Sequence record: NC_048054.1
Reading direction: 5' to 3' (one strand)
DNA: 64,000 bases
The notes under the pieces were generated by a model. It saw only the letters and a program-made list of their open reading frames with translations. It made no database searches and was not told the DNA's origin. Shown here piece by piece: positions 6,752 through 47,926 of the stretch. Every line of letters begins with the position of its first letter. The stretch's first letter is position 1. The position numbers and the translations under genes were made by a program.

Positions 6752-6765
6752 ATGCTAAGGAGCAT
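6752..6765 (+). promoter_or_regulatory. SD-in-loop hairpin
   Basis: ATGC-TAAGGA-GCAT upstream of ATG 6769. Confidence 0.65.
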
Positions 6766-6768
6766 ACA

Positions 6769-7473
6769 ATGAAAGCAGCAGATTTTGACAAAGCATTCAA
6801 CGCGAAAGACGAAGCAACCTTAACCGCATACGCTGACAAGATTGTTGCGGCACTTAACGCTCTCGGTCGCTATGACCTGAAACTTAAAATCATCTTCGGC
6901 ACCGACCCGTACGGCGAGTGTCCTGATTTTGTGAACGACCCTAATGGTCTGCGCGTTATTCAGAATGGCGAAGAAATTTTTGATATCTACACGCCGACTG
7001 AAAAACAGGTTGAAGGCGATTCGTCAGATGTTTTCGTCTACGCTTCGATCACTGGCGTTGAGGCCGCGAAGTGGGGCAAAGATGTTTCAGACAATGACAT
7101 TGCCGAACTTGCCGCTGACCTGAACGAAGAAATCGAACGTGTCGGCCGCGTGTTCGATGAATCTGATCGTCAGATGCTGCAAAAACTCGCCGACACTTTG
7201 AACGCTCGCATGGATCGTACAGATGCGCGGGTGATCGTAACGAACGGCGCCGAAGACGATCTGATTCTTATGGTTGTCGGCTATGATGTAGAAGAAGATG
7301 AAGTCAGTGACGAATACGGCTTCTTCTTATCGCTGCCGTATACTGATGTAGAAGGTACCGACGAGAAATACAGTCTGCACTACGCTGGCTACCCTGGCGT
7401 GAACGACCACTCATACAGCTCTGCTGACCTCGACGAGATCTCAGAAGAAATCGAATCCCTCGACCTGATGTAA
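6769..7473 (+). CDS. acidic hypothetical protein (234 aa)
   Basis: First gene after the 6658 promoter; D/E-rich throughout. Confidence 0.85.
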   Translation: MKAADFDKAFNAKDEATLTAYADKIVAALNALGRYDLKLKIIFGTDPYGECPDFVNDPNGLRVIQNGEEIFDIYTPTEKQVEGDSSDVFVYASITGVEAAKWGKDVSDNDIAELAADLNEEIERVGRVFDESDRQMLQKLADTLNARMDRTDARVIVTNGAEDDLILMVVGYDVEEDEVSDEYGFFLSLPYTDVEGTDEKYSLHYAGYPGVNDHSYSSADLDEISEEIESLDLM

Positions 7474-7480
7474 TCTACAC

Positions 7481-7529
7481 AAAACTGGTCAAAAGCGCCA
7501 TAGCAATGTGGCGCTCATTATCGTATGAT
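7481..7529 (+). promoter_or_regulatory. sigma70-type promoter with conserved upstream element
   Basis: AAAACTGGTCAAAA; 32 nt to -10-like TATGAT (7524-7529); inverted repeat GCGCCA/TGGCGC in the spacer. Confidence 0.55.
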
Positions 7530-7577
7530 GTAATCTCTAGCGCAATGACGCGCTCAACACTGAAAGAGGCAATAACA

Positions 7578-7817
7578 ATGGCTGAGAAACAAGTAGTTCT
7601 TGATCTGATCGCAGACGTGGCATCACCTACAGAAGTTATCTTTGAAGATGGTCAATCGTCTAATGAGTGGCTGGCGCCATACGATCTGCGTCTGACCGTG
7701 TCGCAGAACGAAGGGCCGAACGGCTACCCCGAAGTGAACATCATCGGCGATGAAGACAATCTGAAACGCTTCTTGTCTGAACAAGACCTTGAAGGTTCGG
7801 TCGAAGAAGTGAAGTAA
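7578..7817 (+). CDS. small acidic hypothetical protein (79 aa)
   Basis: Start revised to ATG 7578 (GAGG RBS). Confidence 0.8.
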   Translation: MAEKQVVLDLIADVASPTEVIFEDGQSSNEWLAPYDLRLTVSQNEGPNGYPEVNIIGDEDNLKRFLSEQDLEGSVEEVK

Positions 7818-7826
7818 AGTTGTTTG

Positions 7827-7853
7827 AGCGGGGCTTCGGCCTCGCTTCTTTTT
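7827..7853 (+). terminator. Rho-independent terminator
   Basis: AGCGGGGC-TTCG-GCCTCGCT then TCTTTTT. Confidence 0.85.
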
Positions 7854-7873
7854 ATTCTGCCTGAGATAAAACG

Positions 7874-8377
7874 ATGAAAACATCATACCTGATTATTCGC
7901 CTCAACGCCAAAGATATGTATGACCGTGAATTTTTAATGCGCGGCTTTAACGCAAAACGCATTGAGAAAGTTATCGGCGTTATCGCTATTGTAGGTGAAG
8001 GCCTGCTGACCGATGATTCTAAGATGTACCACCTGTCGCGTGTCGATATCAACCTGCTTGAGTCAGATACTCAACAAAGCTGGGCGCGTTTTAACTGGTC
8101 ATGTATTGACGACAACCTCATTGATTCTGGTATGCGCCGTTTGCCGACTGAGTTGCGCGATAGAATTACGGCGATGCGCACTAATCGCATTTATTGCGAA
8201 GTCGATACGGCTATACCAGAAGCGTTTCGTGATTGCCATACTAAGTTTGTGTATAAGTCACGCCCCGCACGTCTGTCGGTCAGTGACGAGAAAACAGGTA
8301 CGCTCGACGAGTTCACTGTAGAAGAAATCGTAGCTAACCTGAAGACGCGCATTAAAGGCGTCACCATCGCTTTCTAA
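7874..8377 (+). CDS. hypothetical protein
   Basis: 167-aa ORF; no motif recognised. Confidence 0.8.
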   Translation: MKTSYLIIRLNAKDMYDREFLMRGFNAKRIEKVIGVIAIVGEGLLTDDSKMYHLSRVDINLLESDTQQSWARFNWSCIDDNLIDSGMRRLPTELRDRITAMRTNRIYCEVDTAIPEAFRDCHTKFVYKSRPARLSVSDEKTGTLDEFTVEEIVANLKTRIKGVTIAF

Positions 8378-8439
8378 TCATCGTTTGACTGTGGCGTTAC
8401 GGCGCCACTTACTTCACAATCTAATCGAGAGAACATGCC

Positions 8440-9054
8440 ATGAATCTTATCAAAACTTTCTTCGCCAAACGCTCTTACGCTTCTCTGGCTGCTGGTAACT
8501 TCTCAATTGACGCCAAGCATGTACAGGAGCTGGTCGAATGTGAGTGCATGATCGTACACGTTGACACTGGCCATCGTAATGCGTTCGCGTTAAAGAACAT
8601 CTCTATCACACCTATCGACGAGCACAACGTTCGCATTACGTTCGATCCGCTGACCGACGCACACGCAATGCCTGTGACTGTCATGCCGAAAGATTTGAAA
8701 GGCAGCATTGATGTGTACGACATGTACGTAGAAGACCTGAAAGACGTACCGCGTTTCAACGTATCAAGTGACGCGTCAGGCAACAACCCAAACATTCTGT
8801 CGCTTGACCTTGAGAGTCGCCAGCGTTTCGTTCAATACTTCGGTGGTATGTGTACGCTGACTGACCTGTGCCTGACGCTGCACGACAAAGGCATTCACGT
8901 TGTCGATATTCACCATAACGTGAAGCAGCACGATCACGGCGTTGGCGTTTTCACTCAGCGCTACCGCACGGCATTCGAACTGAACAAAGACAACGGCATC
9001 AAACGCCACAACGATGACTTCCCTGTTCTGGCGCGCATGACCGTATTAATGTAA
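8440..9054 (+). CDS. hypothetical protein
   Basis: 204-aa ORF; no motif recognised. Confidence 0.8.
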   Translation: MNLIKTFFAKRSYASLAAGNFSIDAKHVQELVECECMIVHVDTGHRNAFALKNISITPIDEHNVRITFDPLTDAHAMPVTVMPKDLKGSIDVYDMYVEDLKDVPRFNVSSDASGNNPNILSLDLESRQRFVQYFGGMCTLTDLCLTLHDKGIHVVDIHHNVKQHDHGVGVFTQRYRTAFELNKDNGIKRHNDDFPVLARMTVLM

Positions 9055-9063
9055 ACACACATT

Positions 9064-9086
9064 GCCTCGCATTGAGCGGGGCTTTT
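9064..9086 (+). terminator. Rho-independent terminator
   Basis: GCCTCGC-ATTGA-GCGGGGC then TTTT. Confidence 0.65.
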
Positions 9087-9102
9087 CTATTTGGAGAATG
9101 CT

Positions 9103-9363
9103 ATGATTTACGAACGCGAAGAACTCGAAGACATGCCTCTCGATGTGCTTTATCATCTGGCGAGCGCCAAAGGTCTTCTGGACGATCTGGACGATGATGA
9201 CGATGCGCCTGATCGTGAAGTGCTGGTGGGCATGATTCTGGACGCCCAGAATGAAGACGAACAGGCAGAGCAAGATGCTGCCGACAAACAACGCGCCGAA
9301 GATGATCGCGACCCACGTATCAATCGTCGTGATGGTCAAGACGGCTCGGACGACTACTGCTAA
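9103..9363 (+). CDS. small acidic protein with Rho-N/HeH-like helical module
   Basis: Start revised to ATG 9103 (GGAG RBS); LEDMPLDVLYHLASAKGLL...DREVLVGMILDAQ follows the Rho N-terminal pattern L-x-x-M-x-L-x-x-L-x-x-L-A...R-x-x-L-V-x-x-I-L. Confidence 0.6.
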   Translation: MIYEREELEDMPLDVLYHLASAKGLLDDLDDDDDAPDREVLVGMILDAQNEDEQAEQDAADKQRAEDDRDPRINRRDGQDGSDDYC

Positions 9364-9367
9364 CACA

Positions 9368-9395
9368 AGGGCTGCCATTGCTGGTGGCCCTTTTT
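9368..9395 (+). terminator. Rho-independent terminator
   Basis: AAGGGCTGCCA...TGGTGGCCC followed by TTTTT. Confidence 0.75.
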
Positions 9396-9441
9396 CATTT
9401 CTGTAAATATCTCGTACACAAACAACAATGCGAGATATACA

Positions 9442-9810
9442 ATGCGCCGCTTCGTTATCGTCTTCAACGTCAGTCAGGCAGAGCTTGATGACCGCCGCTT
9501 CTTTCAGTCTAAGTTCAATATCGTTTCGTCACTGCGCCGCGCTCGCTGCGTCTTCCTCGTCGTTCGTGAAACCAAACAGGTGCTGTGTGTTTCAGAACTG
9601 ACCTATCAACCGAGCGTCGAGCCTGGCATTCGTCAGGTAGACTTCGATGCGCCGCGTGACGTAACAGCATACGTGCTGCCTTTCGCAGAACTCACCACAG
9701 CGATGATCAATAACTCGCAAGACCCGAGCATTCGTTACTTCGGCCGCAGCCTTGATATGGATATGGACCAGGCCAAACGCTTTCACACTCAACTGGAGAT
9801 TGTCCCATGA
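9442..9810 (+). CDS. hypothetical protein
   Basis: 122-aa ORF downstream of a TCTGTAAATA motif (9400). Confidence 0.75.
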   Translation: MRRFVIVFNVSQAELDDRRFFQSKFNIVSSLRRARCVFLVVRETKQVLCVSELTYQPSVEPGIRQVDFDAPRDVTAYVLPFAELTTAMINNSQDPSIRYFGRSLDMDMDQAKRFHTQLEIVP

Positions 9811-10052
9811 GTCAGACACTAGGCGCCTCGCTTGGCGCTCGCTTCGCTGTTACTTCTCAGGCCAACATTGAGAAGCGTAAGAAGCGCGATCCCAAAAACA
9901 GAACGCTGAGTTGTGCCGCTACCTCAGCGCAGCATGATGCTGTTGGTATACTGGCGAATAAACTCAACGTGTCTCGCTCTCGTGCAGTAGAGATCGCAGT
10001 TGAAGAACTGTTGGCTAAGCATGGCGTTAAGGTGCAGACCGACAATGAGTGA
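9807..10052 (+). CDS. ribbon-helix-helix (CopG-like) DNA-binding protein
   Basis: RTLSCAATSAQHDAVGILANKLNVSRSRAVEIAVEELL fits RHH beta-strand, helix A, S-R-S turn and helix B. Confidence 0.65.
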   Translation: MSQTLGASLGARFAVTSQANIEKRKKRDPKNRTLSCAATSAQHDAVGILANKLNVSRSRAVEIAVEELLAKHGVKVQTDNE

Positions 10053-10407
10053 CACGCACATCTACTGCAAGCTGTATGGCGTCCAGCACCGCTTAAAGAT
10101 CACGGCGTTCAACTTCATGAAGCAGCCGAACATGATCACGGTTGATTCGTCTGACGTGCTCAAGATGCTGCCGCTGATTAATGTCGGTGCAGCATACGAT
10201 ACGTACACGCCGTACAACGTACTCAAAGCTGGACGTGCTGACTTCAAAATCAAATTGATCGAGCGCACTGATGCGAACGTCTGGCGCTATGAGTTCGAAG
10301 ACTATCGTGGTCAACGCTTCGAAACGTACCTGATACGGAGACACTATGAAACGCCTCGGGATTGTAACGGTGTTGTCATTAAAGGACAAACAACCCAAAT
10401 CATGTGA
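10045..10407 (+). CDS. hypothetical protein
   Basis: Start revised to ATG 10045, overlapping the upstream stop. Confidence 0.75.
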   Translation: MSDTHIYCKLYGVQHRLKITAFNFMKQPNMITVDSSDVLKMLPLINVGAAYDTYTPYNVLKAGRADFKIKLIERTDANVWRYEFEDYRGQRFETYLIRRHYETPRDCNGVVIKGQTTQIM

Positions 10408-10981
10408 CCTCGATATCACGCCTGTATCGAAAGACGAAGAATGGGGCTCGCTGAGTCCCTTTCATTTAGGTCCGTGCAGAACGCCAGATGGCGTCATGTT
10501 TCACAACATGGAAAACTTGTGGCAGTACAGCAAGGTCTATGAAGAACATCTCGTCAATTCGAACGATCTATTTCACGGCGAGATTGCTGCCGACTGGTGG
10601 GCGTGGCATTTGAAAGGCAGTATGACAAAACAGGCGCATCGCTATCCTATGGGAAAAGGCCAAAAGGCTCTGTTCTCTAAATGGGGCGACTTGCGCCTTT
10701 CTTACGTTGCCGCACGAAAACAGATCTATGTGCCTGAGTACGCAAAGCTGGTGGTGCAGCAAAAGATGTTCAAACGTTTACTCAAGGAGTATAAGAAAGG
10801 CGCTCACATAGTTTTGCGCGACTATGACACCTACGATATCCAGAAGGCATATCCAGACGCACGTAGTCCCTGGATATCTGCCATTCAAAACAACAATGCT
10901 AAATTCGGACATGCGTTCGTTATTGCATTGGCCTTGCTCTTCCACGAACGACCACTATGGTACAACCAATGGGTGATATGA
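10346..10981 (+). CDS. NADAR-superfamily-like protein (putative ADP-ribose processing)
   Basis: GGAG RBS; LSPF...HNMENLWQYSKVY resembles the NADAR E-x-x-[YFW]-Q-x-x-K motif; also ARKQIYVPEY and GHA near the C-terminus. Confidence 0.5.
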   Translation: MKRLGIVTVLSLKDKQPKSCDLDITPVSKDEEWGSLSPFHLGPCRTPDGVMFHNMENLWQYSKVYEEHLVNSNDLFHGEIAADWWAWHLKGSMTKQAHRYPMGKGQKALFSKWGDLRLSYVAARKQIYVPEYAKLVVQQKMFKRLLKEYKKGAHIVLRDYDTYDIQKAYPDARSPWISAIQNNNAKFGHAFVIALALLFHERPLWYNQWVI

Positions 10982-11286: not shown

Positions 11287-11331
11287 CTGGTCAAAATAGC
11301 CATTCTTTTTAGTACCAGTCTATGATATAAT
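11276..11331 (+). promoter_or_regulatory. sigma70-type promoter with conserved upstream element
   Basis: TCTGCAAATAACTGGTCAAAATAGC; 32 nt to perfect TG-a-TATAAT (11326-11331). Confidence 0.8.
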
Positions 11332-11361
11332 AAAAGCGAGCGCTATTGCTCAAAACAACAC

Positions 11362-11375
11362 AAGCTGAGGAGCTT
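11362..11375 (+). promoter_or_regulatory. SD-in-loop hairpin
   Basis: AAGC-TGAGGA-GCTT upstream of ATG 11379. Confidence 0.65.
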
Positions 11376-11378
11376 AAC

Positions 11379-11696: not shown

Positions 11697-11741
11697 GATT
11701 TGTGAAGGGCCTTCGACGAGGGTCCTTTGAAAATCAAACCA

Positions 11742-11757
11742 TGTTCTGAGGAGAACA
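11742..11757 (+). promoter_or_regulatory. SD-in-loop hairpin
   Basis: TGTTC-TGAGGA-GAACA upstream of ATG 11761. Confidence 0.7.
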
Positions 11758-11760
11758 ACA

Positions 11761-12114: not shown

Positions 12115-12161
12115 TTGTTGCTCGCAGGTTCTTACGAGAGCCTGCTGTCAACATAACCCCA

Positions 12162-12177
12162 TAAGCTGAGGAGCTTA
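12162..12177 (+). promoter_or_regulatory. SD-in-loop hairpin
   Basis: TAAGC-TGAGGA-GCTTA upstream of ATG 12180. Confidence 0.7.
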
Positions 12178-14828: not shown

Positions 14829-15880
14829 ACACAATTTCTGGTTCCGTAATTGATGAAGATGTTCTGGACTGGCTTGATAACTTTAGCTCGCACGACCAGC
14901 GTAAGATTGCTGACACGATCAACGCGATTGCTTATGCGCACCGTACCGAGCTGTCTATTCCAAACATGCTGCATGACGAAGACATTGCTGCACTGTCTCA
15001 TGCCGACCTGTTCACCATTCTGTCGCTCGCTGCGCCGAATGCGAAGTACGACCTCACGTTGTCTAACGTGCAACTGCTTGGTCTGGCTATGAGCGCCCTG
15101 GGCGTCATCGACTACAACCTGCCTGAGTTGAACAGCCCTATCATGATCAAACGTACCTTTGCCGACGAGCGCCGCAAAAATATGCTCGGTGGAGATAGCT
15201 CTCGTGGTGATGTGATTAAAGCACTCAATCAGTGGATATGCGGTATGCGCGATATCGACCTGACTCACGCAGGCACTGATTATGCGCCTGATATCCCAGG
15301 CATGTATTTGTGTCTCGACGAGCATGAACAGATTCGCTATGGCCGTCTGTTCCGTAACAGCAGCGATGGTTGGACATTCTGTGAATCGCACGAGAATAAT
15401 GGCGCTACTGTTTGGTATGATCGTCAGACAACGCACCTCAAGGAAGATGACCTGCCGATGACTTTGCTTAGTCATTGGGTGCTGGTGGCTGAGTGGTATA
15501 GCCCGAACGAACGTGCTGCACAAAAAGCAATCCCGATCGGTATCGTAAGCGACACACATCGTATCTTTATGTTTCTGCGTAGTCTCAGCCCGCATGTGAA
15601 AGCAGAGCTGGTAGCTCACTTCAAAGGTGTGCTTGACCATAAAGAGCCAACGTCTGTTGACGGTATTGGTCGCCTGACTGAACACGACTGGCGAACGGCA
15701 GCAATCGCAGTTGCCGATGACGCTAAAATGCCTGAGGGTGTTAAGAGCTGGTCAGAAGTAAACGCGTGGGTGTGCTTCGTTGCTGTTGCAGAAGCGCTTG
15801 GCTTTAACTTTGAAACTCGTCAGTTTGACCCGCAGTTTGACTATCAGGCAAATGACGATGCACTGGAAGAAGATGAATGA
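14825..15880 (+). CDS. hypothetical protein
   Basis: 351-aa ORF, ATGA-coupled. Confidence 0.8.
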   Translation: MNTISGSVIDEDVLDWLDNFSSHDQRKIADTINAIAYAHRTELSIPNMLHDEDIAALSHADLFTILSLAAPNAKYDLTLSNVQLLGLAMSALGVIDYNLPELNSPIMIKRTFADERRKNMLGGDSSRGDVIKALNQWICGMRDIDLTHAGTDYAPDIPGMYLCLDEHEQIRYGRLFRNSSDGWTFCESHENNGATVWYDRQTTHLKEDDLPMTLLSHWVLVAEWYSPNERAAQKAIPIGIVSDTHRIFMFLRSLSPHVKAELVAHFKGVLDHKEPTSVDGIGRLTEHDWRTAAIAVADDAKMPEGVKSWSEVNAWVCFVAVAEALGFNFETRQFDPQFDYQANDDALEEDE

Positions 15881-16086
15881 ATAGAAAGATGATTGCCTGG
15901 GCAGCTTTGGTGATCTTCTGCGTGGTGGGCGTGGTAGCTTCCACTGTCGCACTCAATCACTACAACTTCCTGTTGAGCACGTTGCTCACAATCGTATTTG
16001 GCGTTGGCCTCGTTATCTGCGTGAAGTGCTTAGACGCGGCCACATGGGATTACTGCGTTAAGAAAGGAAAAGAAAAGAATGGCTAA
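15877..16086 (+). CDS. small two-TM membrane protein
   Basis: Two hydrophobic stretches and a basic C-terminus. Confidence 0.7.
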   Translation: MNRKMIAWAALVIFCVVGVVASTVALNHYNFLLSTLLTIVFGVGLVICVKCLDAATWDYCVKKGKEKNG

Positions 16087-16612
16087 ATCACTTGGCGTTT
16101 ACCTGACGTATATCTTGCGTCATAAGCCACAAGATATCGGCATCGCAATGGACACTCAGGGTTGGGTGTCTGTGCATGAGCTGCTTGAGAAAGCGCGTTA
16201 TGTAAAACCAGTCACTCTGGAAACACTGACCGCCGAAGTGGAGTCAGACAACAAAGGTCGATTCGAGTTCAACAAAAACAAAACGCGCATACGTTGTGTT
16301 CAGGGTCACTCGGTTGAGCATGTGCTTTTGAACATGCAGGAGTGGACAGACTGGTCGCCGTTGTATCATGGTACGGCAGAAAAGAACATCTCGTCTATTC
16401 AGCATGACGGCATTCTAAAACGCAAACGCAAGCACGTCCATCTGAGCAACGATCTCGAAACTGCTCGACGTGTTGGTCAACGTCATGGCGTACCTGTTGT
16501 GTTCCAGATTGATACACTGTCCATGATTACTCACGGCTATAAGTTTTACCGTGCGGAGAACGGAGTCATCCTGACCGAGTACGTTCCTTCCCGCTACATC
16601 CGACTGGTGTAG
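16079..16612 (+). CDS. kptA: RNA 2'-phosphotransferase (Tpt1/KptA family)
   Basis: YILRH, GWVSV, DNKGRF, IRCVQGHS, LYHGT, RKHVHLS, VVFQID and FYRAENGVILT: all hallmark Tpt1 motifs are present. Confidence 0.95.
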   Translation: MAKSLGVYLTYILRHKPQDIGIAMDTQGWVSVHELLEKARYVKPVTLETLTAEVESDNKGRFEFNKNKTRIRCVQGHSVEHVLLNMQEWTDWSPLYHGTAEKNISSIQHDGILKRKRKHVHLSNDLETARRVGQRHGVPVVFQIDTLSMITHGYKFYRAENGVILTEYVPSRYIRLV

Positions 16613-17028: not shown

Positions 17029-17077
17029 TATAATAGAGATGAACGCTAGACACTCGTTTAGCTACTTACATGAGGAT

Positions 17078-18571
17078 ATGTATATGAAAAAGATTAAACA
17101 CGCTTTCCGTCTGACTGACCTGGTTAATATCGAAAAAGTCGATACCGTTGATTATTCCCAATTACACCACGGTAAACGTGCTATCATTGTTGGTCGTGAG
17201 TCTGACTGCCAGATGTATGACCTGCATATCGAAGGTGTTGGCGTCCACCACATGCAGTACCCAGAAGAATGTCTGTCGCTTATTAAGCGCAATCAGGGTG
17301 AGATGCTCGACAAGTGGGAAGCTGGTAAGTACGGCAAGAAGAAAAAGGTTGAACGCAAGATTCCTGACGTGCTGCGTAACTTCACTGCTATCCTGCCTGT
17401 GACCTGCAACGCCGATTGTTCATTCTGTCCTGAGAAAGAGATGGAGAACAAAGCGTCGCAGAAAGAGTGGCTGGACAAACTGATCGCTGCGATTAAGACT
17501 CACGGTCATCGCGTTGATCACGTATCTATCTCTGGTGGCGAACCTACACTGCGTATGAAGTACCTGTTCGAAACGATCGACCAGATTCAGACCAAAGCAC
17601 ATATGTATAAAGTTGGTCTGACGTCGAATGGTCAGTTCCTTGAGAAACCTAATCAGTTGCTGACATTCCTTGACCTGAACACCAACGAGATGTTGGAAAG
17701 CAAACTGTCGCATCTGAATATCAGTATGCACTCGTTCGACCGTGAGAAAGCAAACAAGATCATGGGCGTTAATTATACGTGGACTCTCGAAGACTTAGCC
17801 CGCTTCCGTCGTCAGTTAGGCCGCAAGCTGAGTTTCCACATCAACTTCGTTATCAACGAACAAAACATTGATAACATCGAGTGGGAGTTCCGTCAAGCCA
17901 ACGAGTTCATGAAAGAGAACCAGTGGATTGACGTTGTGTTCCGTGTTGACTACAACAACAAGAAGCTGAACAAAGAACTGCGTAAGTACGGTCTGGCGGT
18001 ACAGGCTGCGCGTGAAGCAAAACGACCACGCGATAAGAGCATCAAGTACACGCCTCCGAAAGTTAAAGAGCCTGCGCTGATCAGGCTGTTTAACTCGATC
18101 TTCGACGGTAGCTTCTACGATGACTTGACCGAAGAGACTATGCCTGGCATTGGTGATACGTTCACAACTGCATGTCCGTCCTGCTTCACTCACCGAAGCA
18201 CTGACTTGGGTAATAGCTTCGCCTACCTGAAAGCGTCTTCATACGAACCGAACGAAGACGAAGAAGAATACACCGAGATGGTGTTCCACATGGACGGCGG
18301 CCTGTACTTCGACTGGTCACGCAAAGAGCCTGTACCTGAAATGAAGGCGAAGACTAAAAAGTCGAAGCGCTTCGACTTCGAACAAAAGGCAGAGCATGAT
18401 GAACCTAATGGTGCTGCGCTTAAACTTGAACACGGTAAGAAAGCCAAACCTGTTCGCGTTAAGAAAGTCAAGAAGACTGAACCACAAGGCTACCCAGATA
18501 GCTGCAACTATCCTTCTCCGTGCAGTTACTCGCGTGGTTCGTCTTGCAGTTTCGGCAGCGGCATGTGCTAA
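17078..18571 (+). CDS. radical SAM enzyme with N-terminal extension and Cys/Ser-rich C-terminal tail
   Basis: CNADCSFC (CxxxCxxC), ISGGEPT, LTSNG, LNISMHS. Start 17078 or 17084 (GAGGA RBS). Confidence 0.9.
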   Translation: MYMKKIKHAFRLTDLVNIEKVDTVDYSQLHHGKRAIIVGRESDCQMYDLHIEGVGVHHMQYPEECLSLIKRNQGEMLDKWEAGKYGKKKKVERKIPDVLRNFTAILPVTCNADCSFCPEKEMENKASQKEWLDKLIAAIKTHGHRVDHVSISGGEPTLRMKYLFETIDQIQTKAHMYKVGLTSNGQFLEKPNQLLTFLDLNTNEMLESKLSHLNISMHSFDREKANKIMGVNYTWTLEDLARFRRQLGRKLSFHINFVINEQNIDNIEWEFRQANEFMKENQWIDVVFRVDYNNKKLNKELRKYGLAVQAAREAKRPRDKSIKYTPPKVKEPALIRLFNSIFDGSFYDDLTEETMPGIGDTFTTACPSCFTHRSTDLGNSFAYLKASSYEPNEDEEEYTEMVFHMDGGLYFDWSRKEPVPEMKAKTKKSKRFDFEQKAEHDEPNGAALKLEHGKKAKPVRVKKVKKTEPQGYPDSCNYPSPCSYSRGSSCSFGSGMC

Positions 18572-27932: not shown

Positions 27933-28219
27933 TGAAAGGAAAGAAGTTAGACGTATTCCTGCAACAACGCACGGCGATAAACAAGGTAGCTTCCAGTCCG
28001 CAAGACTGGCAGACCTATAAAGAAATGCTGTTGAACATACGGCTCGCCGTTGCTGTTGAACCACGACCCGATGCTGCGGTACGGCACTTAGCTCGTACTT
28101 GGCACGCGGAAAAGAAATATGCGCTCCCTGTCTGTCAGGCTACGCTTCTTAAACTCATGACGTTGAAGAAAGCGAACCAAACGCTTGAAGAAATGATCGC
28201 GCTCTACATTGGACCTTGA
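27932..28219 (+). CDS. hypothetical protein
   Basis: 95-aa ORF, TAATG overlap. Confidence 0.75.
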   Translation: MKGKKLDVFLQQRTAINKVASSPQDWQTYKEMLLNIRLAVAVEPRPDAAVRHLARTWHAEKKYALPVCQATLLKLMTLKKANQTLEEMIALYIGP

Positions 28220-28234
28220 GGAAGGACAGAAACA

Positions 28235-31446: not shown

Positions 31447-31644
31447 GTGATTATCGCCTACTATATTGTGGGCGTTATCATATTCATTCGCGATCTATGC
31501 GAAGTCGCAGAAGACACGGTGCTCCGCAAACAGTTCAATGCGGAACTCGAACAGATCTCTAACACAGGTCTTGCGATTGAACTTATCCGTGTTGTGCTAT
31601 TCGTTGTGTTTATCCACATTCCTTGCTGGATATTCCGCGTATAG
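31447..31644 (+). CDS. small membrane protein
   Basis: Two hydrophobic segments; start uncertain. Confidence 0.5.
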   Translation: MIIAYYIVGVIIFIRDLCEVAEDTVLRKQFNAELEQISNTGLAIELIRVVLFVVFIHIPCWIFRV

Positions 31645-31702
31645 TGACGCTACTCACACGAGGAGCCTTACGTGGGTTCCTCATTATCGTAATATAAACA
31701 CT

Positions 31703-32017
31703 ATGGCAAAGAAAACTTATCTGCTACCTCGTGAGCGCCCAAGCCCGTTGCCTAATCTACGAGCCTATCTCGCGTTTCTCGCCCGGAAGCCTAATGCTAA
31801 TCGCGCAGTATTAGAATCGTATTGCAAAGCAAGTCTGGCACAAATGGCGCGCGGCCGTTTCTTTGTAGGTAAGCTCTTTGGCTACAAGGTGTATACGAAA
31901 TCGAACAAGCTCGCATACACGGTTGTGTGGATTGACCCATACAACTACGATTGTCTTGTTCTAAACCATCAAAGGAGAGAAGTAGAGTTTAAAAACCTTT
32001 ATGGCCTGCTTTTATAG
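31703..32017 (+). CDS. hypothetical basic protein
   Basis: ATG 31703 chosen; the track's upstream extension overlaps the previous gene. Confidence 0.6.
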   Translation: MAKKTYLLPRERPSPLPNLRAYLAFLARKPNANRAVLESYCKASLAQMARGRFFVGKLFGYKVYTKSNKLAYTVVWIDPYNYDCLVLNHQRREVEFKNLYGLLL

Positions 32018-32054
32018 TTAGGTCCTAGCGCCTTCACACTAGGGGAATCTTCCG

Positions 32055-32732
32055 ATGATAACTGTTCTTAACAATCGTACCGACGAGGTAATTAAACGCC
32101 TGAACGTAGCAGTATGGGTATGTGTCGCAATCATGTTTGCTGTCTTCATCGCAATCGTGAGTAACGCAAACGCCAGTATGTCTACAGGCCCTGACAACGC
32201 CATTGATCTTTCATCTTCCGTGTCACTCGATCCCTCCAATCGTGTGGCAACCAAATACAAGGAGATAGAAAAGGCAGTAGCCGCAAAAGAAGAACGAAGG
32301 CCCAAACGTTATGTAACGAGAGAGCGCCTCCGACAACTCTATGCGCACTTGCCGCATCCGTCTGACTTAGGCAAGCAGATTGATTTGGCCGCAGAGAAGT
32401 ACAACGTAGATGCAAAATTGCTTCTATCGATCTGCGTGTCCGAGTCGCATCTTCGTGCAAAGGTCAGGAACAAGTCCGGAGCTACAGGCCTGTGTCAAAT
32501 CATGCCTAAAATGCACGGACGTTCTGTACGGGAACTCATGGACTACCGAATCAATGTTGATCAGGCAGCCCAGATTGTTGCGTTACTAAACAAGCAGTGT
32601 AGAGGCAGACGCGCCTGCGTCATCCAAAGTTACAACACTGGTTGGGGAGCATATTTGAGAGGGGTACGTGCCCCACAATATTTAGCGAAAGTACAGACTG
32701 AGTATCGCCGCAAGCATACTCCATCTTCCTAA
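32055..32732 (+). CDS. soluble lytic transglycosylase (SLT family) with N-terminal TM helix
   Basis: AAEKYNVDAKLLLSICVSES (catalytic Glu), SGATGLCQIMP, NVDQAAQIV, SYNTG; TM segment VAVWVCVAIMFAVFIAIVSNANA. Confidence 0.9.
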   Translation: MITVLNNRTDEVIKRLNVAVWVCVAIMFAVFIAIVSNANASMSTGPDNAIDLSSSVSLDPSNRVATKYKEIEKAVAAKEERRPKRYVTRERLRQLYAHLPHPSDLGKQIDLAAEKYNVDAKLLLSICVSESHLRAKVRNKSGATGLCQIMPKMHGRSVRELMDYRINVDQAAQIVALLNKQCRGRRACVIQSYNTGWGAYLRGVRAPQYLAKVQTEYRRKHTPSS

Positions 32733-32747
32733 TAAGAGGACATAATA

Positions 32748-38781: not shown

Positions 38782-38830
38782 AAAACTGGACAAAACAGCG
38801 GTAGTATCTGAAAGCGTCCTATGATACAAT
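38782..38830 (+). promoter_or_regulatory. sigma70-type promoter with conserved upstream element
   Basis: AAAACTGGACAAAACAGC; 32 nt to TG-a-TACAAT (38825-38830). Confidence 0.75.
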
Positions 38831-38864
38831 AGAAGCGTAGCTTGTGCTGCGCTTTTATAACATA

Positions 38865-38878
38865 TGTCTGAGGAGACA
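38865..38878 (+). promoter_or_regulatory. SD-in-loop hairpin
   Basis: TGTC-TGAGGA-GACA upstream of ATG 38884. Confidence 0.65.
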
Positions 38879-40251: not shown

Positions 40252-40340
40252 GCCCGTCCAGAAATGCTCACCCCCAATGAGGCGCCCTTCGCAGAGGCGT
40301 GACGACGCGGGTCCTTTTTGAAGCGTACTGAGTAGTGCGC
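40252..40340 (+). ncRNA. candidate structured RNA element (three-way junction)
   Basis: GCCCGTC/GAC(GC)GGGT encloses hairpins CTCA/TGAG and CGCCCT/AG(A)GGCG, followed by CCTTTTT and a further hairpin GCGTAC/GTGCGC. Confidence 0.35.
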
Positions 40341-40361
40341 TGCATAAAGTACCTAAAACCA

Positions 40362-40375
40362 AACAGGAGGCTGTT
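40362..40375 (+). promoter_or_regulatory. SD-in-loop hairpin (tetraloop variant)
   Basis: AACAG-GAGG-CTGTT upstream of ATG 40377. Confidence 0.6.
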
Positions 40376-42514: not shown

Positions 42515-42531
42515 CTCTGAGGAGTAATCGA

Positions 42532-42684: not shown

Positions 42685-42693
42685 GCAATAACG

Positions 42694-42723
42694 AGCAGGG
42701 CAGTGAAATATAGCTGCCCTGCT
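42694..42723 (+). other. strong hairpin without U-tract
   Basis: AGCAGGGCAG / CTGCCCTGCT perfect 10-bp stem. Confidence 0.7.
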
Positions 42724-42740
42724 ATCTGCGAAGTATGCAG

Positions 42741-42790
42741 AAAACTGGACAAAATCGTGGTTGTTATCTGACGGCCACCTATGCTATAAT
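42741..42790 (+). promoter_or_regulatory. sigma70-type promoter with conserved upstream element
   Basis: AAAACTGGACAAAAT; TTGTTA-18 nt-TATAAT (42785-42790) with TG extension; 33 nt from TGGACA. Confidence 0.8.
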
Positions 42791-42827
42791 AGATTCAGAC
42801 GCAATAGTGCGTCACACACAAAAACAC

Positions 42828-42841
42828 ATACTGAGGAGTAT
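42828..42841 (+). promoter_or_regulatory. SD-in-loop hairpin
   Basis: ATAC-TGAGGA-GTAT upstream of ATG 42847. Confidence 0.65.
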
Positions 42842-42846
42842 TAATC

Positions 42847-44478
42847 ATGGCACGTATCGAAACTAGCACTAACCTGGTTGGCAAAACTATCGTCCTGCTG
42901 AACGGCACCAAATCTAAAATCGAAGATGCAATCGCGTCTGGTTATAAAGTGAAGGGCCTGACCAAGCGTATCGCCACCCGCTGCATCATCAAAGAAGGCT
43001 CTCACTTCCGCGAAATCGAGCGCATGAACATGAGCCAGCTGGAAGATACAGGCGAAGGTTATGTTAAGCTGAAAGATGCGAAAGCGTCTGGCAAGAAAAC
43101 TGCCAAGAAAGAAACAGCCGCGCCGAAAGCGTCTGGTAAGAAAGCTGGCACCAAGAAAACTTCTGGCAAGAAAGATGCCAAGCCGTCGAAAGACAAAGAG
43201 CCGAAAGTTCGCCGTAAATCTTCCGAAGAGCAATCCGAAGATTACCAGAATCTGGCACACGCTATCATCAAAGGCGGCAAAGCCAAGCCTGCTGTTGAGA
43301 TCGAAGCTGTAGACGAAGCGCTGACCGATAGCGTAGCGAAACGCCTCGCCGACTACGTGCTTAACTCAGACGTTGCGCGTGTTTGTGCTGACAACAAAAC
43401 GCCGATCGCTAACGCACTGGACGTTACTTACGGTGCCGAGTATGCGCCTGAAGGCAACGTGCTCCAGATTACTCTGAACCTGCAATATGCGGCGCCTGTT
43501 AAAACTGTTGCTGCTGCGCCTGAGCTGGACGAAGCTGTTGCGAAACGTGCTGCCAAGCTCGCTGCTAAGAAAATTGGCAAAGTGTTGGCGAAAGCAATCA
43601 AAGCTGCGTTCGACCTCGAAGATGCGAACGACCTGCTGCCAGGCACCGTGCTGACTAACGACGGTACTGAGTTCGTGTTCGTCGGTGAGTCTGCGAAACA
43701 TGCAGGCAAAGCGCTGATGTATAGCGCCGATACTGACGGCTTCAAATCATTCGGTGCCGACAAACTGGCCGACTTCGAAATCGTCGCTGATGAAAGCGAA
43801 GAAGAGGAAGACGAAGATGAAATTGAAGACGAAGATGAAATCGAGGAGGAAGAAGAAGAGGAAGAATCCTCCGAAGACGAAGAAGACGGTGAAGAAGACG
43901 ATGGCGAAGAAGAAGACGGCGAATCGCAAGATGCCGAATACGAGTTCGTCGCAGTCGATGCCGATCAACTTGAACTGGTTAATAAGAAAGTAACCGCTAA
44001 GTATCACGCCGCTCTGGCTGAACGCTTCGGTGTTGATGAAGAGGCGCTGGCCCCTGGCCTGATGCTGACTGATGGCGAAACTACTTTCGCTTACCTCGGC
44101 TGCGATAGCAAAGGTGGTCTGCTGGTTATCGACCTGTCTGACGATGCAGACGAAGATGATAACGTGCTGGTGTATAGCAAAGCCGATATCAAAACTCTGA
44201 CCGACTTTAGCCCTGTGATCGATAGCGGTGAAGCTGACGATTCAGAAGAAGAAGACGGTGAGGAAGAAGACGGCGAAGAAGAAGACTTCGAAGAAGATGG
44301 CGAAGAGGAAGATGACGAAGAAGAGGAAGACGACTTCGAGTTCAACGACCTGCCGTCCGAAGATCTGGAAGACCTGTCTGATGACGAACTGCGTGACCGC
44401 GTAGTTGAAGCCGGCCTGACCACTGTGCGCAAAGCTGAAAACATGACTGCTGCACAACTGCGCAAGCTGCTGAAATAA
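42847..44478 (+). CDS. modular acidic protein (shared N-domain, Lys-rich linker, two repeated beta domains, D/E tracts, C-terminal HeH-like module)
   Basis: Repeats LLPGTVLTNDGTEFVFVG and LAPGLMLTDGETTFAYLG; C-terminal LSDDELRDRVVEAGLTTVRKAENMTAAQLRKLL. Confidence 0.9.
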   Translation: MARIETSTNLVGKTIVLLNGTKSKIEDAIASGYKVKGLTKRIATRCIIKEGSHFREIERMNMSQLEDTGEGYVKLKDAKASGKKTAKKETAAPKASGKKAGTKKTSGKKDAKPSKDKEPKVRRKSSEEQSEDYQNLAHAIIKGGKAKPAVEIEAVDEALTDSVAKRLADYVLNSDVARVCADNKTPIANALDVTYGAEYAPEGNVLQITLNLQYAAPVKTVAAAPELDEAVAKRAAKLAAKKIGKVLAKAIKAAFDLEDANDLLPGTVLTNDGTEFVFVGESAKHAGKALMYSADTDGFKSFGADKLADFEIVADESEEEEDEDEIEDEDEIEEEEEEEESSEDEEDGEEDDGEEEDGESQDAEYEFVAVDADQLELVNKKVTAKYHAALAERFGVDEEALAPGLMLTDGETTFAYLGCDSKGGLLVIDLSDDADEDDNVLVYSKADIKTLTDFSPVIDSGEADDSEEEDGEEEDGEEEDFEEDGEEEDDEEEEDDFEFNDLPSEDLEDLSDDELRDRVVEAGLTTVRKAENMTAAQLRKLLK

Positions 44479-44548
44479 GATCGACCTGTAATACGAAAAC
44501 TTGAAGTAAGATGCGGTTCAGACAGAGCCGCATCTCTGACAACTAAGC

Positions 44549-44562
44549 TGATTGAGGAATCA
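44549..44562 (+). promoter_or_regulatory. SD-in-loop hairpin (tetraloop variant)
   Basis: TGATT-GAGG-AATCA upstream of ATG 44567. Confidence 0.6.
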
Positions 44563-44566
44563 CACT

Positions 44567-45799
44567 ATGTCAAACGCAAATGCAAACCTGTTGAATGCCC
44601 GTGTACGTCGTCTGGATGGCACCACCACTTTCATCAACAAAGTAAACGCTAACGGTTATAGCACCGACGCGAAAGGTCCGCAGATTCCGGTGAAGCGTAT
44701 CGTGCTTGCTGGTAAAACTCTGAAAGAGATCGAACAGCCGTATGCGAAAGCCGAGCACGTTCTGATTGACGGCATCACCGTTAAGCTGAACAAGCGCCAG
44801 CAGAAAGATCTGCGCAACGACGAAATCGACGTTGACACTATCAAGCCTGACTTCGGCAATCTGGTCTACATCGACCCTGAGACAGGCAAGCCTGCTGTGA
44901 AAACTGCGAAAGTGAAAGGCGGCGTGAAAGCTACCCGCGAACGTAACAAAGACAAGCGCACCAAGAAAGAGCGTAAAGCAGAAGTCGCCGCATCGAAAGA
45001 CGAAATCGACGTACTGCCGTCTGATAAAGTTGATCGTAAAACTGAACTGGCTGGCATCATCGACGCAACCATCGCCGACGCGAATACGAAAGACCGTCGC
45101 AAGATGTTGAGCGAAGCGTTTGACATGGACTGGAAAGATGTGAAGAAACACGGCGGTGCTGGTGTTATCAAACACATGGGCCGCAAAGCTGCACAGACCG
45201 CAGTGAATCGCCTGAACGCCAGCGTAACGCAAGACACGTTCATCAAGCAGATGCCTGTCGCGTTGAAACGTCTGATTCAAGACGGCGCCCTGACGTTGAA
45301 TCGTTCGCAGATTGAGCGCGTACTTAGTGCGCTTGACCTCGACGTGAAATTCTACGATGTTGCCATTCAAACTCTGATGGGCAACCTCAAGCTGACTCTC
45401 GATAAGTCCATCGAGAACCCGAAAGTGAAATCAAAGAAGGCAAAGCATAAACTCGCCGTGCCTACTTACGCGTCTGAAAAGGAAATCAGCAAACGCATCC
45501 GCAAGATGACAATCAAGCTGATTAAGCCGAGCAAGAAAGATATGCCCGCGCTGAAAGAGCACTCGAAAGCATCGAAAGCGGTTATCGCTAAAAAGCTGGG
45601 TATCAAATCTTCTGACGTGAAGCGCGGCCTGATCGTGTACAAGCCGAACGGCGTTGAGTTGATGTTCCTGACTTGCGATATGACGGGTCCTGTCTTCATC
45701 GACAAAGACGGTGCCGAGAGTGTGATGGCCCATGCTAATGTGGACAGCACTTTCAATCTGACCCTGGGCAAAACTTCTGAACTGGACGCCAGCGTATGA
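44567..45799 (+). CDS. Lys-rich paralogue of 42847 ORF
   Basis: Start revised to ATG 44567; N-domain NLLNARVRRLDGT...GY...IPVKRIVLAGKTLKEIE versus NLVGKTIVLLNGT...GY...IATRCIIKEGSHFREIE. Confidence 0.9.
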   Translation: MSNANANLLNARVRRLDGTTTFINKVNANGYSTDAKGPQIPVKRIVLAGKTLKEIEQPYAKAEHVLIDGITVKLNKRQQKDLRNDEIDVDTIKPDFGNLVYIDPETGKPAVKTAKVKGGVKATRERNKDKRTKKERKAEVAASKDEIDVLPSDKVDRKTELAGIIDATIADANTKDRRKMLSEAFDMDWKDVKKHGGAGVIKHMGRKAAQTAVNRLNASVTQDTFIKQMPVALKRLIQDGALTLNRSQIERVLSALDLDVKFYDVAIQTLMGNLKLTLDKSIENPKVKSKKAKHKLAVPTYASEKEISKRIRKMTIKLIKPSKKDMPALKEHSKASKAVIAKKLGIKSSDVKRGLIVYKPNGVELMFLTCDMTGPVFIDKDGAESVMAHANVDSTFNLTLGKTSELDASV

Positions 45800-46176
45800 C
45801 AAACAACGAAATCGTTTTGTCTGGTGTGTTTGCGCAAATCTATTCGCGGCTGACAACGGCCGCGATACTGAAAACCTACGTGTATTACTCTGACCTGTCG
45901 CCTGCTGTGTTCGGTCTCCAGCTCAATGTGAGCACTGCACAATACCACGCGCTGTGGGAATTTGTTGTAAAGACCATGCGACTTGATATAGCTAACGGCC
46001 GCCCACCGTTAGCTGCGCTCTACGTATCACGGGCAAACGACGAGAAGGCTCCTGCGAAGAAGTTCTTCTCTGAATACTACAAGCTCACTGGGAAGCGCCT
46101 GACACTTGATGAATGGCAAGCACTCGTTGAACATGTGTGGAAATCATATGAGCCAGATCTTCGGGAGCCATCATGA
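45796..46176 (+). CDS. hypothetical protein
   Basis: 126-aa ORF, ATGA overlap. Confidence 0.75.
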   Translation: MTNNEIVLSGVFAQIYSRLTTAAILKTYVYYSDLSPAVFGLQLNVSTAQYHALWEFVVKTMRLDIANGRPPLAALYVSRANDEKAPAKKFFSEYYKLTGKRLTLDEWQALVEHVWKSYEPDLREPS

Positions 46177-46634
46177 AAAAGTCGAAAGTTGTAATTAGTC
46201 GTGGCGGCTACAGGCCGTCTTCACCAGAAGAAGCTCAGAAGCTGGTAGCTGAGTTTATTCTGGGTACTATCGGTGTTAACCCTACTGTTATCAGCCAGCA
46301 AATGTTGTTGAACATTGCGAACTACAATTACCTGACGTCTATCGCTGACACAGGTAAGGCTAATCAAGCGAACCAGAGCGCATTGCATAAAACTGTAAAA
46401 GAACTTAATGCGTTCTGTAGATTGCACAAGATTCCACTGGGATTACTAATTATGCCGCATACGTCGGACAGTGATTATGCTGGTGACGAGGTTGTAGCGA
46501 TTCCTTGGGAGCATGTGCGCACAAACGCATTGAGCCAGTCTGCCATCGAATCTCTGTTTGAAGTAGTTGTAGCCGATGGTTATCCGCAGTTTGTGACTGA
46601 TGCGAAAACAGTAGAGGGATACAATGTTTTATGA
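46173..46634 (+). CDS. hypothetical protein
   Basis: 153-aa ORF, ATGA overlap. Confidence 0.75.
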   Translation: MKKSKVVISRGGYRPSSPEEAQKLVAEFILGTIGVNPTVISQQMLLNIANYNYLTSIADTGKANQANQSALHKTVKELNAFCRLHKIPLGLLIMPHTSDSDYAGDEVVAIPWEHVRTNALSQSAIESLFEVVVADGYPQFVTDAKTVEGYNVL

Positions 46635-47904
46635 CCACGTATTCAACCACGACCAGAGACAGTTGCTCTTGTCGGTGGCTGAATCTAAATATCTGGTGCG
46701 GCTCGACTGCCCCGACTATTTGAAAAAGTCGAAACATGCAATTGAAGTTCGGCACACAGTAACCAACCGCGGCGAACAGCGTCGTAGCGGTACAATCACA
46801 ACTGCATTCGTACCTCGCATTCATTCCGCAACCGTTCAGCGGCTTGTTCGTGAGGTGCGTGATACCCAGAGCAAAAGCGCATCGTCCAGTCTGGCCGCGC
46901 TATTTGAGCTGGGGCTTGGTGTACCGAAGCAACATGACATTGCGGTGTACCTTAAAGACTACTGCCAGGAAAACGATAAGAAGGGTGTGGGTATCAAGTA
47001 TATCCGCAAACTGATTAACGAATACCACCGCAAGCATCGTCATAGCTTCGCGGGAAGTCGCTGGTTGATGCCTGCCGCATATACGGCGAACATGCTCAAC
47101 ATGCAGTCTTTCATTCATCTGAAAGAAGACGGCTATGCGAACAAGGTTAAAGTGCCTGACGGTATTCCTGTCGTGTTCATCTACCAGAACACGAATCATG
47201 AGCAAGCCACATTTACTTTGTGTGACGCATTCACGATAAGCCCGCTTGGTTATCCAATGCCGTTCGCACAGATAGCGTTACGACCTGAGTTCAAAGCTGC
47301 ACCGAAAGAGTTCAAGTCGAAAGCGTTGCGTGGTAAGAGCATGTATGCAATGGTCATGGGCATGGTTTACTGGACAGAAGGCGATTCTGTTTCTAACTTC
47401 CGTGAACTGCAAGATATCGACGACGACCCGTACCTGACGCTGCTGTCAAATGACAAGTACGCTGATCGCCGTAGCCCTGAATATCAGGCGCTGCTGGATG
47501 AACGTGTTGCGTTGAACGAGCAAGCACCGAAGTGGAACGCAGTGATTGCCAAGTACGGTAACACGACTCGAACGCTCAAGCCAGAGCAAGCCGAGAAACT
47601 CCAGAAAGCTAACGACTTCTTCCAGAGGCGTAAAGAGTTCATGGATGCTTTCGACAAGTTCGAGAAGAAAGAGAACCACCACGCCGCGAAGAAGTTCGCT
47701 GCTGCCCGTGCTCTGTTTGCTGCCGTAGATTGTGGTACTATCATGGACCGCAGTACGTACATGTCGGTATCGTCTGGTCTTGACGATGTGAATAAAATTC
47801 TCACTCGGTGGGGATTCACTACAGTCAACACTGTTAATAGTAGTTTGAAGAAGTCTATCCTTACTTACGACCGCAAAGGCGCAAGTCGCGTCTGGTCGCT
47901 GTAG
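46624..47904 (+). CDS. hypothetical basic protein
   Basis: 426-aa ORF, GAGGG RBS. Confidence 0.8.
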   Translation: MFYDHVFNHDQRQLLLSVAESKYLVRLDCPDYLKKSKHAIEVRHTVTNRGEQRRSGTITTAFVPRIHSATVQRLVREVRDTQSKSASSSLAALFELGLGVPKQHDIAVYLKDYCQENDKKGVGIKYIRKLINEYHRKHRHSFAGSRWLMPAAYTANMLNMQSFIHLKEDGYANKVKVPDGIPVVFIYQNTNHEQATFTLCDAFTISPLGYPMPFAQIALRPEFKAAPKEFKSKALRGKSMYAMVMGMVYWTEGDSVSNFRELQDIDDDPYLTLLSNDKYADRRSPEYQALLDERVALNEQAPKWNAVIAKYGNTTRTLKPEQAEKLQKANDFFQRRKEFMDAFDKFEKKENHHAAKKFAAARALFAAVDCGTIMDRSTYMSVSSGLDDVNKILTRWGFTTVNTVNSSLKKSILTYDRKGASRVWSL

Positions 47905-47910
47905 ACAACC

Positions 47911-47926
47911 TTATCTGAGGAGATAA
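47911..47926 (+). promoter_or_regulatory. SD-in-loop hairpin
   Basis: TTATC-TGAGGA-GATAA upstream of ATG 47932. Confidence 0.7.

Follow-up and report, generated by a model that had tools for sequence, protein, structure and literature searches.

The question raised by this locus is whether the Shine-Dalgarno (SD) sequence of a phage gene can be displayed by a conserved RNA structure and, if so, what reads that structure. The stretch analysed (the window, 64 kb) is identical to positions 197,659-261,658, i.e., the last 64 kb, of the 261,658-bp genome of Dickeya phage vB_DsoM_AD1 (NC_048054.1), a jumbo phage of the genus Alexandravirus that is referred to here as AD1. Every annotated gene of the window is on the + strand, and the majority are hypothetical. 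Ten AD1 genes carry the SD core in the tetraloop of a small hairpin at the ribosome site (Table 1). The element is a stem of 5-6 base pairs (bp) that closes a GAGG tetraloop (AAGG at 6752), i.e., RAGG, with a stem of only 4 bp at site K. The reading favoured here, at a probability of roughly 0.55, is that the hairpins would be cis-acting, self-insulated parts of a conserved translation-initiation leader with the ribosome as reader. The ten downstream proteins have no Pfam match and no informative PDB relative, and fall into PHROG families of unknown function only.

An initial annotation of the window had reported nine of the hairpins, and each of the nine is present with the position and stem it described. 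It had also divided them into a hexaloop and a tetraloop class. The hairpins of both classes stand; the division does not, since the T and A that flank GAGG in C-TGAGGA-G pair with each other and covary, leaving a tetraloop rather than a hexaloop, and the two classes are merged here as one RAGG tetraloop. At site G the SD is AGGAGG, which places the loop in a different register on the anti-SD.

The frequency of these hairpins was compared with expectation at the annotated starts of AD1 (330, all ATG, GTG or TTG), of which 329 have enough upstream sequence to be used. Hairpins were required to have at least 4 Watson-Crick pairs directly flanking the loop, and flanks were swapped between sites in 5000 permutations. 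In this shuffled-flank comparison, proposed by the initial annotation as a check, 9 of the 102 annotated GAGG ribosome sites form hairpins, clearly above the 0.57 expected and matched in 0 of the 5000 permutations. All are in the window (9 of 31 GAGG sites), with none in the rest of AD1 (0 of 71, structural genes included). When all 256 tetraloops are ranked by their occurrence on perfect stems of 5 bp or more across the whole AD1 genome, GAGG likewise comes first (8 of 615 occurrences versus about 0.6 expected), although it is a rare tetramer. These eight hairpins are all on the + strand, all in the window, and all end 1-5 nt before an ATG. The loop registers GGAG and AGGA and pentaloops show no excess at ribosome sites. 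A chance origin of the hairpins is excluded for practical purposes.

The family is also sharply bounded. A larger set of imperfect hairpins was considered and rejected: when G.U pairs or one mismatch are allowed, the excess consists of exactly the ten perfect sites, with 4 imperfect hairpins found versus about 5 expected. The weaker G-U versions that the initial annotation placed near 1476 and 30378 do exist; they occur at background frequency and are poorly conserved. A general property of SD-rich phage genes is similarly rejected, as no such hairpin is found in the 58 kb of the T4 early region used for comparison or in the other 198 kb of AD1. A covariance model, also suggested by the initial annotation, gives its highest scores (14.9-23.6 bits) to the ten sites on which it was trained, and its scan of AD1 and the 58 kb of T4 returns nothing else above 14.0 bits and thus no new member. 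Sites K (15.2 bits) and I (14.9 bits) are barely above the model background, and K is the weakest and an uncertain member. In Rfam, no match at gathering score is found for either strand of the 64-kb window. A possible extra member with the other loop register AGGA precedes the radical SAM protein gene gp267; this hairpin is kept in most relatives, and its closing G.U is G-C in Alexandra. Taken as a class, AGGA loops are not significantly enriched (5 versus 2.2 expected, p=0.07). In T4, the ribosome site of gene 45 (T4 region 32604-32621, - strand) has the SD in the hexaloop of a 4-bp A/T stem, AATT[GAAGGA]AATT; its model score is just 12.6 bits (E about 5), for which chance is quite possible in an A/T-rich genome.

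Comparison among relatives carries the case for an RNA structure. Syntenic regions of about 50 kb from 10 relatives were compared with AD1, giving 11 genomes from five genera; the relatives include seven Alexandravirus genomes, Y3 (Sasquatchvirus), SNUABM_7 (Snuvirus) and SNUABM_5 (Rivsvirus). Orthologous sites were located via protein similarity, regardless of whether a hairpin was present. SD hairpins occur at the orthologous ribosome sites in nearly all of the genomes, and in a metagenomic relative as well. The hairpin block has a mean identity of 93% across orthologs versus 54% for the linker 8-22 nt upstream. Among the 52 distinct 18-mer variants collected from the 11 genomes, pairing is retained in 84.9% of cells versus 50.3% after shuffling. 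The covariation score is 0.843 versus 0.175 when shuffled, a value reached by 0 of 500 shuffles (the 11 genomes are kin, hence such counts are not probabilities), and controls with slid partners do not exceed 0.17. Pairing amounts to 96-100% at the four innermost positions and 87% at the fifth; as many as four kinds of Watson-Crick pair occur at a position. The five inner pairs together comprise 233 Watson-Crick, 5 G.U, 0 A.C and 7 other combinations. The pair that closes the loop covaries too (UA 38, GC 6, CG 5 and UG 1 of the 52 variants). Because G.U is tolerated and A.C is absent in the inner pairs, it is the sense-strand RNA, rather than the DNA, that appears to be selected, and the comparisons support selection on the hairpin as an RNA structure. 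The compensatory variation that the initial annotation had seen between sites of one genome, and taken as a sign of such selection, is thus borne out at orthologous sites as well.

Individual sites show how pairing is preserved. The closing pair of site A is U-A in AD1, U.G in SNUABM_33 and SNUABM_17, and C-G in SNUABM_1, SNUABM_22 and Alexandra. Site B, which is missing from AD1, has an A-U to C-G change. Site C extends to 6 bp in most relatives and shows an A-U to U-A swap in SNUABM_5; site E has G.U variants in SNUABM_33 and SNUABM_23 and an A-U to U-A change in Y3. The outer pair of site F goes from U-A to A-U in Y3 and to C-G in SNUABM_5, and the stem of site H is lengthened to 6-7 bp in the more distant relatives. 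The hairpins of sites G and I are invariant in 9 and 10 genomes, respectively. The hairpin is lost outright in few cases, namely at site E in Alexandra, at site I in SNUABM_5 and at site K in several genomes. The site J hairpin is also present in the metagenomic relative (L021); a search of IMG/VR with gp317 yields only close relatives, one of them new. In SNUABM_17, both arms and the spacer of site D (region positions 15752-15767) are those of the neighbouring cassettes, TAAGCT/AGCTTA followed by ACATG, a stem swap that looks like gene conversion between repeated leaders, as in the shuffling mediated by promoter-early stem-loops (PeSLs).

The SD hairpins are weak (-1.9 to -5.2 kcal/mol, never more than 7 bp). 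With the 16S 3' tail sequence taken from general knowledge, the SD:anti-SD duplex is -6.7 to -10.4 kcal/mol and is stronger than the hairpin at every site. The SD hairpin is part of the minimum-energy fold of 9 of the 10 leaders, the exception being site I in AD1, and outside the SD hairpin the leaders have no more structure than shuffled sequence does. The probability that a 4-nt SD core is fully unpaired has an ensemble median of 0.97 at the ten sites versus 0.025 at the other 268 AD1 sites (p=3e-7). A hexaloop with a U-turn was entertained as the main fold, as C-U-G-A fits YUNR, and is rejected: the loop-adjacent U-A covaries to C-G and G-C through U.G, and the tetraloop form is 1.4-3.6 kcal/mol more stable than the hexaloop form.

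The hairpins are embedded in a leader of common order, in which a stable upstream hairpin is followed by an unstructured linker of 10-20 nt that is A/C-rich and G-poor, the SD hairpin, and an AUG 1-9 nt past the stem. Loop-to-AUG spacing is 5-13 nt, mostly 8-10 nt, which is the normal SD range. Over 71 distinct ortholog linkers, A+C makes up 72% and G 5%; other AD1 genes have 53% A+C at this position (p=0.001). Linker composition is retained although the sequence itself diverges. The upstream hairpin of sites D, E, G and I is terminator-like, and these leaders have stem-loop and SD without a recognisable promoter. Sites A, C, F and H instead follow an extended -10 element, TATGnTAnAAT, of which the 262-kb genome has 5 copies, all on the + strand in the window, and 4 of the 5 lie 58-67 nt upstream of these hairpin genes. 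This is probably the promoter class meant by the initial annotation, whose statement that four hairpins sit on the first gene after one promoter class agrees with these positions. The upstream hairpin of these four sites is predicted from sequence to be at the transcript 5' end. Taken together, one genome block, one rare promoter type and one leader architecture support the view that the hairpins mark a distinct class of genes and are not a trait of ribosome sites at large.

Table 1. Coordinates in the window of the SD hairpins and the associated leader features.
Feature	Sequence	Position	Strand	Start codon	Gene	Remark
SD hairpin, site A	ATGCT[AAGG]AGCAT	6752..6765	+	ATG 6769	gp245
SD hairpin, site C	AAGCT[GAGG]AGCTT	11362..11375	+	ATG 11379	gp255
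SD hairpin, site D	TGTTCT[GAGG]AGAACA	11742..11757	+	ATG 11761	gp256
SD hairpin, site E	TAAGCT[GAGG]AGCTTA	12162..12177	+	ATG 12180	gp257
SD hairpin, site K	CCTT[GAGG]AAGG	28214..28225	+	ATG 28235	gp289	overlaps gp288 stop codon
SD hairpin, site F	TGTCT[GAGG]AGACA	38865..38878	+	ATG 38884	gp304
SD hairpin, site G	AACAG[GAGG]CTGTT	40362..40375	+	ATG 40377	gp307
SD hairpin, site H	ATACT[GAGG]AGTAT	42828..42841	+	ATG 42847	gp312 (543 aa)
SD hairpin, site I	TGATT[GAGG]AATCA	44549..44562	+	ATG 44567	gp313 (410 aa)
SD hairpin, site J	TTATCT[GAGG]AGATAA	47911..47926	+	ATG 47932	gp317 (1007 aa)
Possible extra member	TACATG[AGGA]TATGTA	17067..17082	+	ATG 17084	gp267	other loop register
Extended -10 element	TATGATACAAT	6703..6713	+			upstream of site A; consensus scan finds same element
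Extended -10 element	TATGATATAAT	11321..11331	+			upstream of site C
Extended -10 element	TATGATACAAT	38820..38830	+			upstream of site F
Extended -10 element	TATGCTATAAT	42780..42790	+			upstream of site H
Predicted 5'-proximal leader hairpin		6724..6738	+			transcript A; start placed from -10 element
Predicted 5'-proximal leader hairpin		11338..11351	+			transcript C; G-C to A-U in Y3 counterpart
Predicted 5'-proximal leader hairpin		38833..38854	+			transcript F
Predicted 5'-proximal leader hairpin		42798..42813	+			transcript H
Stable terminator-like hairpin with U-tract, then A/C-rich linker		11704..11728	+			upstream of site D
Stable hairpin, then A/C-rich linker		12124..12145	+			upstream of site E
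Stable hairpin, then A/C-rich linker		40322..40341	+			upstream of site G
Stable hairpin, then A/C-rich linker		44510..44534	+			upstream of site I

The identity of the reader follows from the bases that do not vary. Across the 52 variants, the invariant bases are solely the A-G-G of the loop, which is the SD core, and the C-U that frequently precedes the loop pairs with the A-G of GAGGAG, leaving no conserved base unexplained. Because the sole invariant bases are the SD core and the C-U is explained by pairing, the ribosome is the simplest reader. In the mechanism proposed, the local hairpin would keep the purine-rich SD from capture by other pyrimidine-rich sequence (e.g., the U/C tracts of adjacent terminators), while the linker would give the 30S subunit and protein S1 a place to land (a standby site). 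The 16S 3' end would then pair with U-R-A-G-G-A-G from the loop, unzip the weak stem, and free the spacer and start codon. The predicted outcome is strong, context-independent initiation and perhaps shielding of the A/U-rich spacer from RNase E. In a shuffled block of early-type genes, such a module would fit those whose translation begins independently, downstream of a promoter or terminator.

Several points weigh against the hairpins being cis-acting leader parts read by the ribosome. Helix formation between a 4-nt loop and the 16S tail requires the stem to open, and unpaired in the ensemble is not the same as available; the hairpin may even lower the rate of initiation instead of raising it. 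The sites do not represent ten independent inventions, being in part paralogous copies of a single cassette (stems are shared by B, C, D and E), and the transcription starts are placed by the -10 elements only. The confinement to one class of genes is a further difficulty, as a purely beneficial cis device might be expected more widely, and class-specific regulation is a fair reading of it. The loop is nearly always RAGG, even at site G with its other SD register, which hints at a constraint on the loop itself.

The leader architecture resembles experimentally defined ribosome-standby leaders, and by this analogy a standby role is predicted for AD1. The leaders of the MS2 coat gene and of the tisB +42 mRNA similarly combine a ribosome-binding site in a local stem-loop with an adjacent unstructured strand, and the C/A-rich strand of AD1 is of near-optimal length. 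CA-repeat tails 16-18 nt long, placed before the stem-loop of a ribosome-binding site, strongly raise translation (PMC5934652), and tisB standby depends on S1 and uses a single-stranded region together with a 5' stem-loop (PMC6690012); a 5' stem-loop is also predicted at four AD1 sites. By contrast, the known standby structures are stable, inhibitory and sequester the SD and/or AUG, whereas the AD1 stem is weak, with the SD core in the loop and the AUG outside. In T4, conserved cis hairpins of the initiation region also set initiation efficiency, enhancing it in genes 25 and 38 and inhibiting it in e, soc, 49 and I-TevI (PMC3014915). The hairpins of genes 25 and 38 differ in that they lie between SD and AUG and reduce the distance separating them, in the inhibitory cases the SD or AUG is buried within a helix, and no T4 case puts the SD in a tetraloop. 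At the cassette level, the PeSLs of ORFan regions share with sites A, C, F and H a repeated series of terminator stem-loop, sigma-70-like promoter, SD and ATG (PMC2839356, PMC4122927). Exchange between copies may be shared too; for the AD1 family it is suggested by one stem swap. PeSLs are from T4-type phages, however, and their stem-loop is a terminator near or within the promoter and not an SD hairpin. The closest known systems are PeSLs at the level of the cassette and, at the level of RNA, standby leaders and the T4 initiation-region hairpins. A search of the open literature (subscription-only papers being outside its scope) found no earlier account of SD-in-tetraloop hairpins in phages.

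A dedicated reader was part of the initial proposal, which took the hairpins for a translation-level regulon read by an RNA-binding protein or nuclease; the distinct gene class remains, while the evidence does not require a dedicated reader. That a phage-encoded repressor or activator binds the RAGG tetraloop on its 5-6 bp stem and switches the early-type genes together is possible, if doubtful. The restriction to one genome block with one promoter and leader type, the near fixation of RAGG whatever the SD register and the high conservation of stem sequence at each site point this way, as does the pairing of a variable stem with a fixed loop that is typical of the MS2 coat-protein and T4 gp43 operators (PMC3014915). 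These operators are likewise small ribosome-site hairpins with a fixed loop and tolerant stem, but are single-copy with a known binder, whereas the AD1 element has at least ten copies and no known binder. No candidate protein is identified, SD function and pairing already account for all conserved bases, and the ten downstream genes, like most genes of the phage, are without known function and give no independent sign of a regulator. That the RAGG hairpins are operators of a new translational regulator or site-specific ribonuclease, timing an early-type regulon in Alexandravirus-like jumbo phages, is accordingly a tentative and somewhat unlikely proposal. Host RsmA/CsrA, which would link early phage translation to host physiology, is quite improbable as the reader. 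Dickeya and Erwinia hosts do have an Rsm system, GGA lies at the junction of loop and stem in 41 of the 52 variants, and a short hairpin that displays G-G-A at or near its loop over the SD is the classical shape of a Csr target. The AD1 loop is shifted by one in register, however, and in the covariation-supported fold the A of GGA is base-paired in the closing pair. Five of the 52 variants, which are of the RAGG-GG type and come from sites A, M and O of relatives, lack GGA, and site G has it in another register; none of the 52 fit the C-ANGGAN-G hexaloop and just 7 have ANGGA. A single GGA occurs between -60 and +10 in 9 of the 10 leaders, while high-affinity Csr regulation normally uses at least two, and no CsrA homologue is detectable in AD1. 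The analogy to CsrA/RsmA drawn by the initial annotation holds up poorly.

Its second analogy, to T4 RegB, fares no better. In this account the hairpins would be targets of a RegB-like endonuclease that cuts GG/AG within the SD and so inactivates early messages or, alternatively, would shield the SD and A/U-rich spacer from such nucleases or RNase E, and either role is unlikely. In its favour, GGAG or GGAU is present in 37 of the 52 variants, several spacers resemble the A-rich RegB/S1 consensus, and the genes look early, which is the class whose GGAG-containing SDs RegB attacks in T4. [quoted passage not shown] This same protection counts against cleavage of the hairpins, as RegB with S1 naturally acts on single strands of 11 nt whose tail is A-rich (PMC1702504, PMC3014915), whereas the 3' part in AD1 is the paired arm of the stem. 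The opened form also bears its cost of 1.4-3.6 kcal/mol, and the pair that it breaks covaries. Some sites are without GGAG: site I carries GGAA and the A-type variants lack GGA; at site G, GGAG is present in another register. No RegB homologue is found in AD1 by tblastn and phmmer with T4 RegB as query (best E about 0.5-0.9), although remote or non-homologous nucleases are beyond such a search. A final account dispenses with RNA and treats the palindromes as DNA, i.e., as repeated intergenic cassettes that aid recombination and gene shuffling in the manner of PeSLs (PMC2839356, PMC4122927). The leaders are indeed repeated terminator-promoter-SD-ATG cassettes in an ORFan block whose gene content varies among relatives, and in SNUABM_17 both arms of site D are replaced by the version of a neighbouring cassette. 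This account is nonetheless very improbable: the strand-specific bias of 5 G.U to 0 A.C is expected for RNA only, single-pair compensatory changes and the path from U-A through U.G to C-G preserve pairing, the SD always forms the loop and is correctly spaced from the AUG, and most stems differ, while recombination needs identical copies.

Other promoter-like and structural signals are present in AD1. A CTGGACAAAA-like box is located about 33 nt upstream of the -10 element in most TATGnTAnAAT copies. The fifth copy, at 59458 (+), is followed by a strong hairpin (59483-59508) in a 283-nt stretch (59458-59740) that is without an annotated gene before gp326 and has a sole open reading frame of 44 aa (59467-59601); candidates for this stretch are a small RNA, a long leader and a small gene missed by the annotation. 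An inverted repeat, TCTGCGAAGT(C/A)TGCA(GA), is common to 6649-6663 and 42725-42741, between terminator and promoter of sites A and H, and may be an operator or a small hairpin. The idea that, at sites E, I and J, transcripts begin from a CTGTAAATA-type phage promoter with the SD hairpin at their extreme 5' end is not supported: the motif is real and promoter-like, yet in its strict form it is upstream of no hairpin gene and is unrelated to this gene class. The T4-type late promoter TATAAATA, sought as a temporal marker, is essentially absent. The motif (A)TCTGTAAATA has 35 copies in AD1, 25 of them within 110 nt upstream of a gene start (typically 27-48 nt), and is a candidate phage-specific (middle or late) promoter. 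It precedes replication-type genes and the phage sigma factor gene, none of which has an SD hairpin, and in the window it is found about 41, 88 and 54 nt upstream of the starts at 9442, 27420 and 52639.

Three further regions bear on the gene content of AD1. A 1.1-kb segment (31645-32747) has no annotated gene and is overlapped by open reading frames of 183 aa (31466-32017) and 225 aa (32055-32732); relatives annotate a 'transglycosylase' of about 226 aa at the matching position, and AD1 probably has an unannotated gene here. The RecA/UvsX-like gene gp239 (window 1-1441) is unusually long (2526 nt in AD1 and 3576 nt in SNUABM_17), which suggests an inserted element such as an intein or homing-endonuclease domain. 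A Tpt1-like RNA 2'-phosphotransferase is encoded at 16079-16612 and an RNA ligase at record position 193278, outside the window; the two form a putative RNA-repair pair, which suggests exposure to RNA-cleaving defences of the host.

The covariation seen in five genera and the absence of a match in Rfam justify describing the element as an RNA family. If a protein reads the hairpins, they would define a post-transcriptional regulon in a poorly understood group of jumbo phages that serve in the control of fire blight and soft rot, and the hairpin RNA would be a direct bait for finding the regulator. A new translational regulator or ribonuclease in this role would represent a new RNA-protein control system, similar in function to T4 RegA/RegB and unrelated to them in sequence. 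If instead the hairpins are cis-acting parts of a leader read by the ribosome, they would reveal a natural, modular, plug-in translation leader, composed of a 5' hairpin, a C/A-rich standby linker and a self-insulated SD hairpin, that works independently of its neighbours. Such a leader would rank among the clearest comparative examples of a structured ribosome site under selection and would offer a ready part for expression design.

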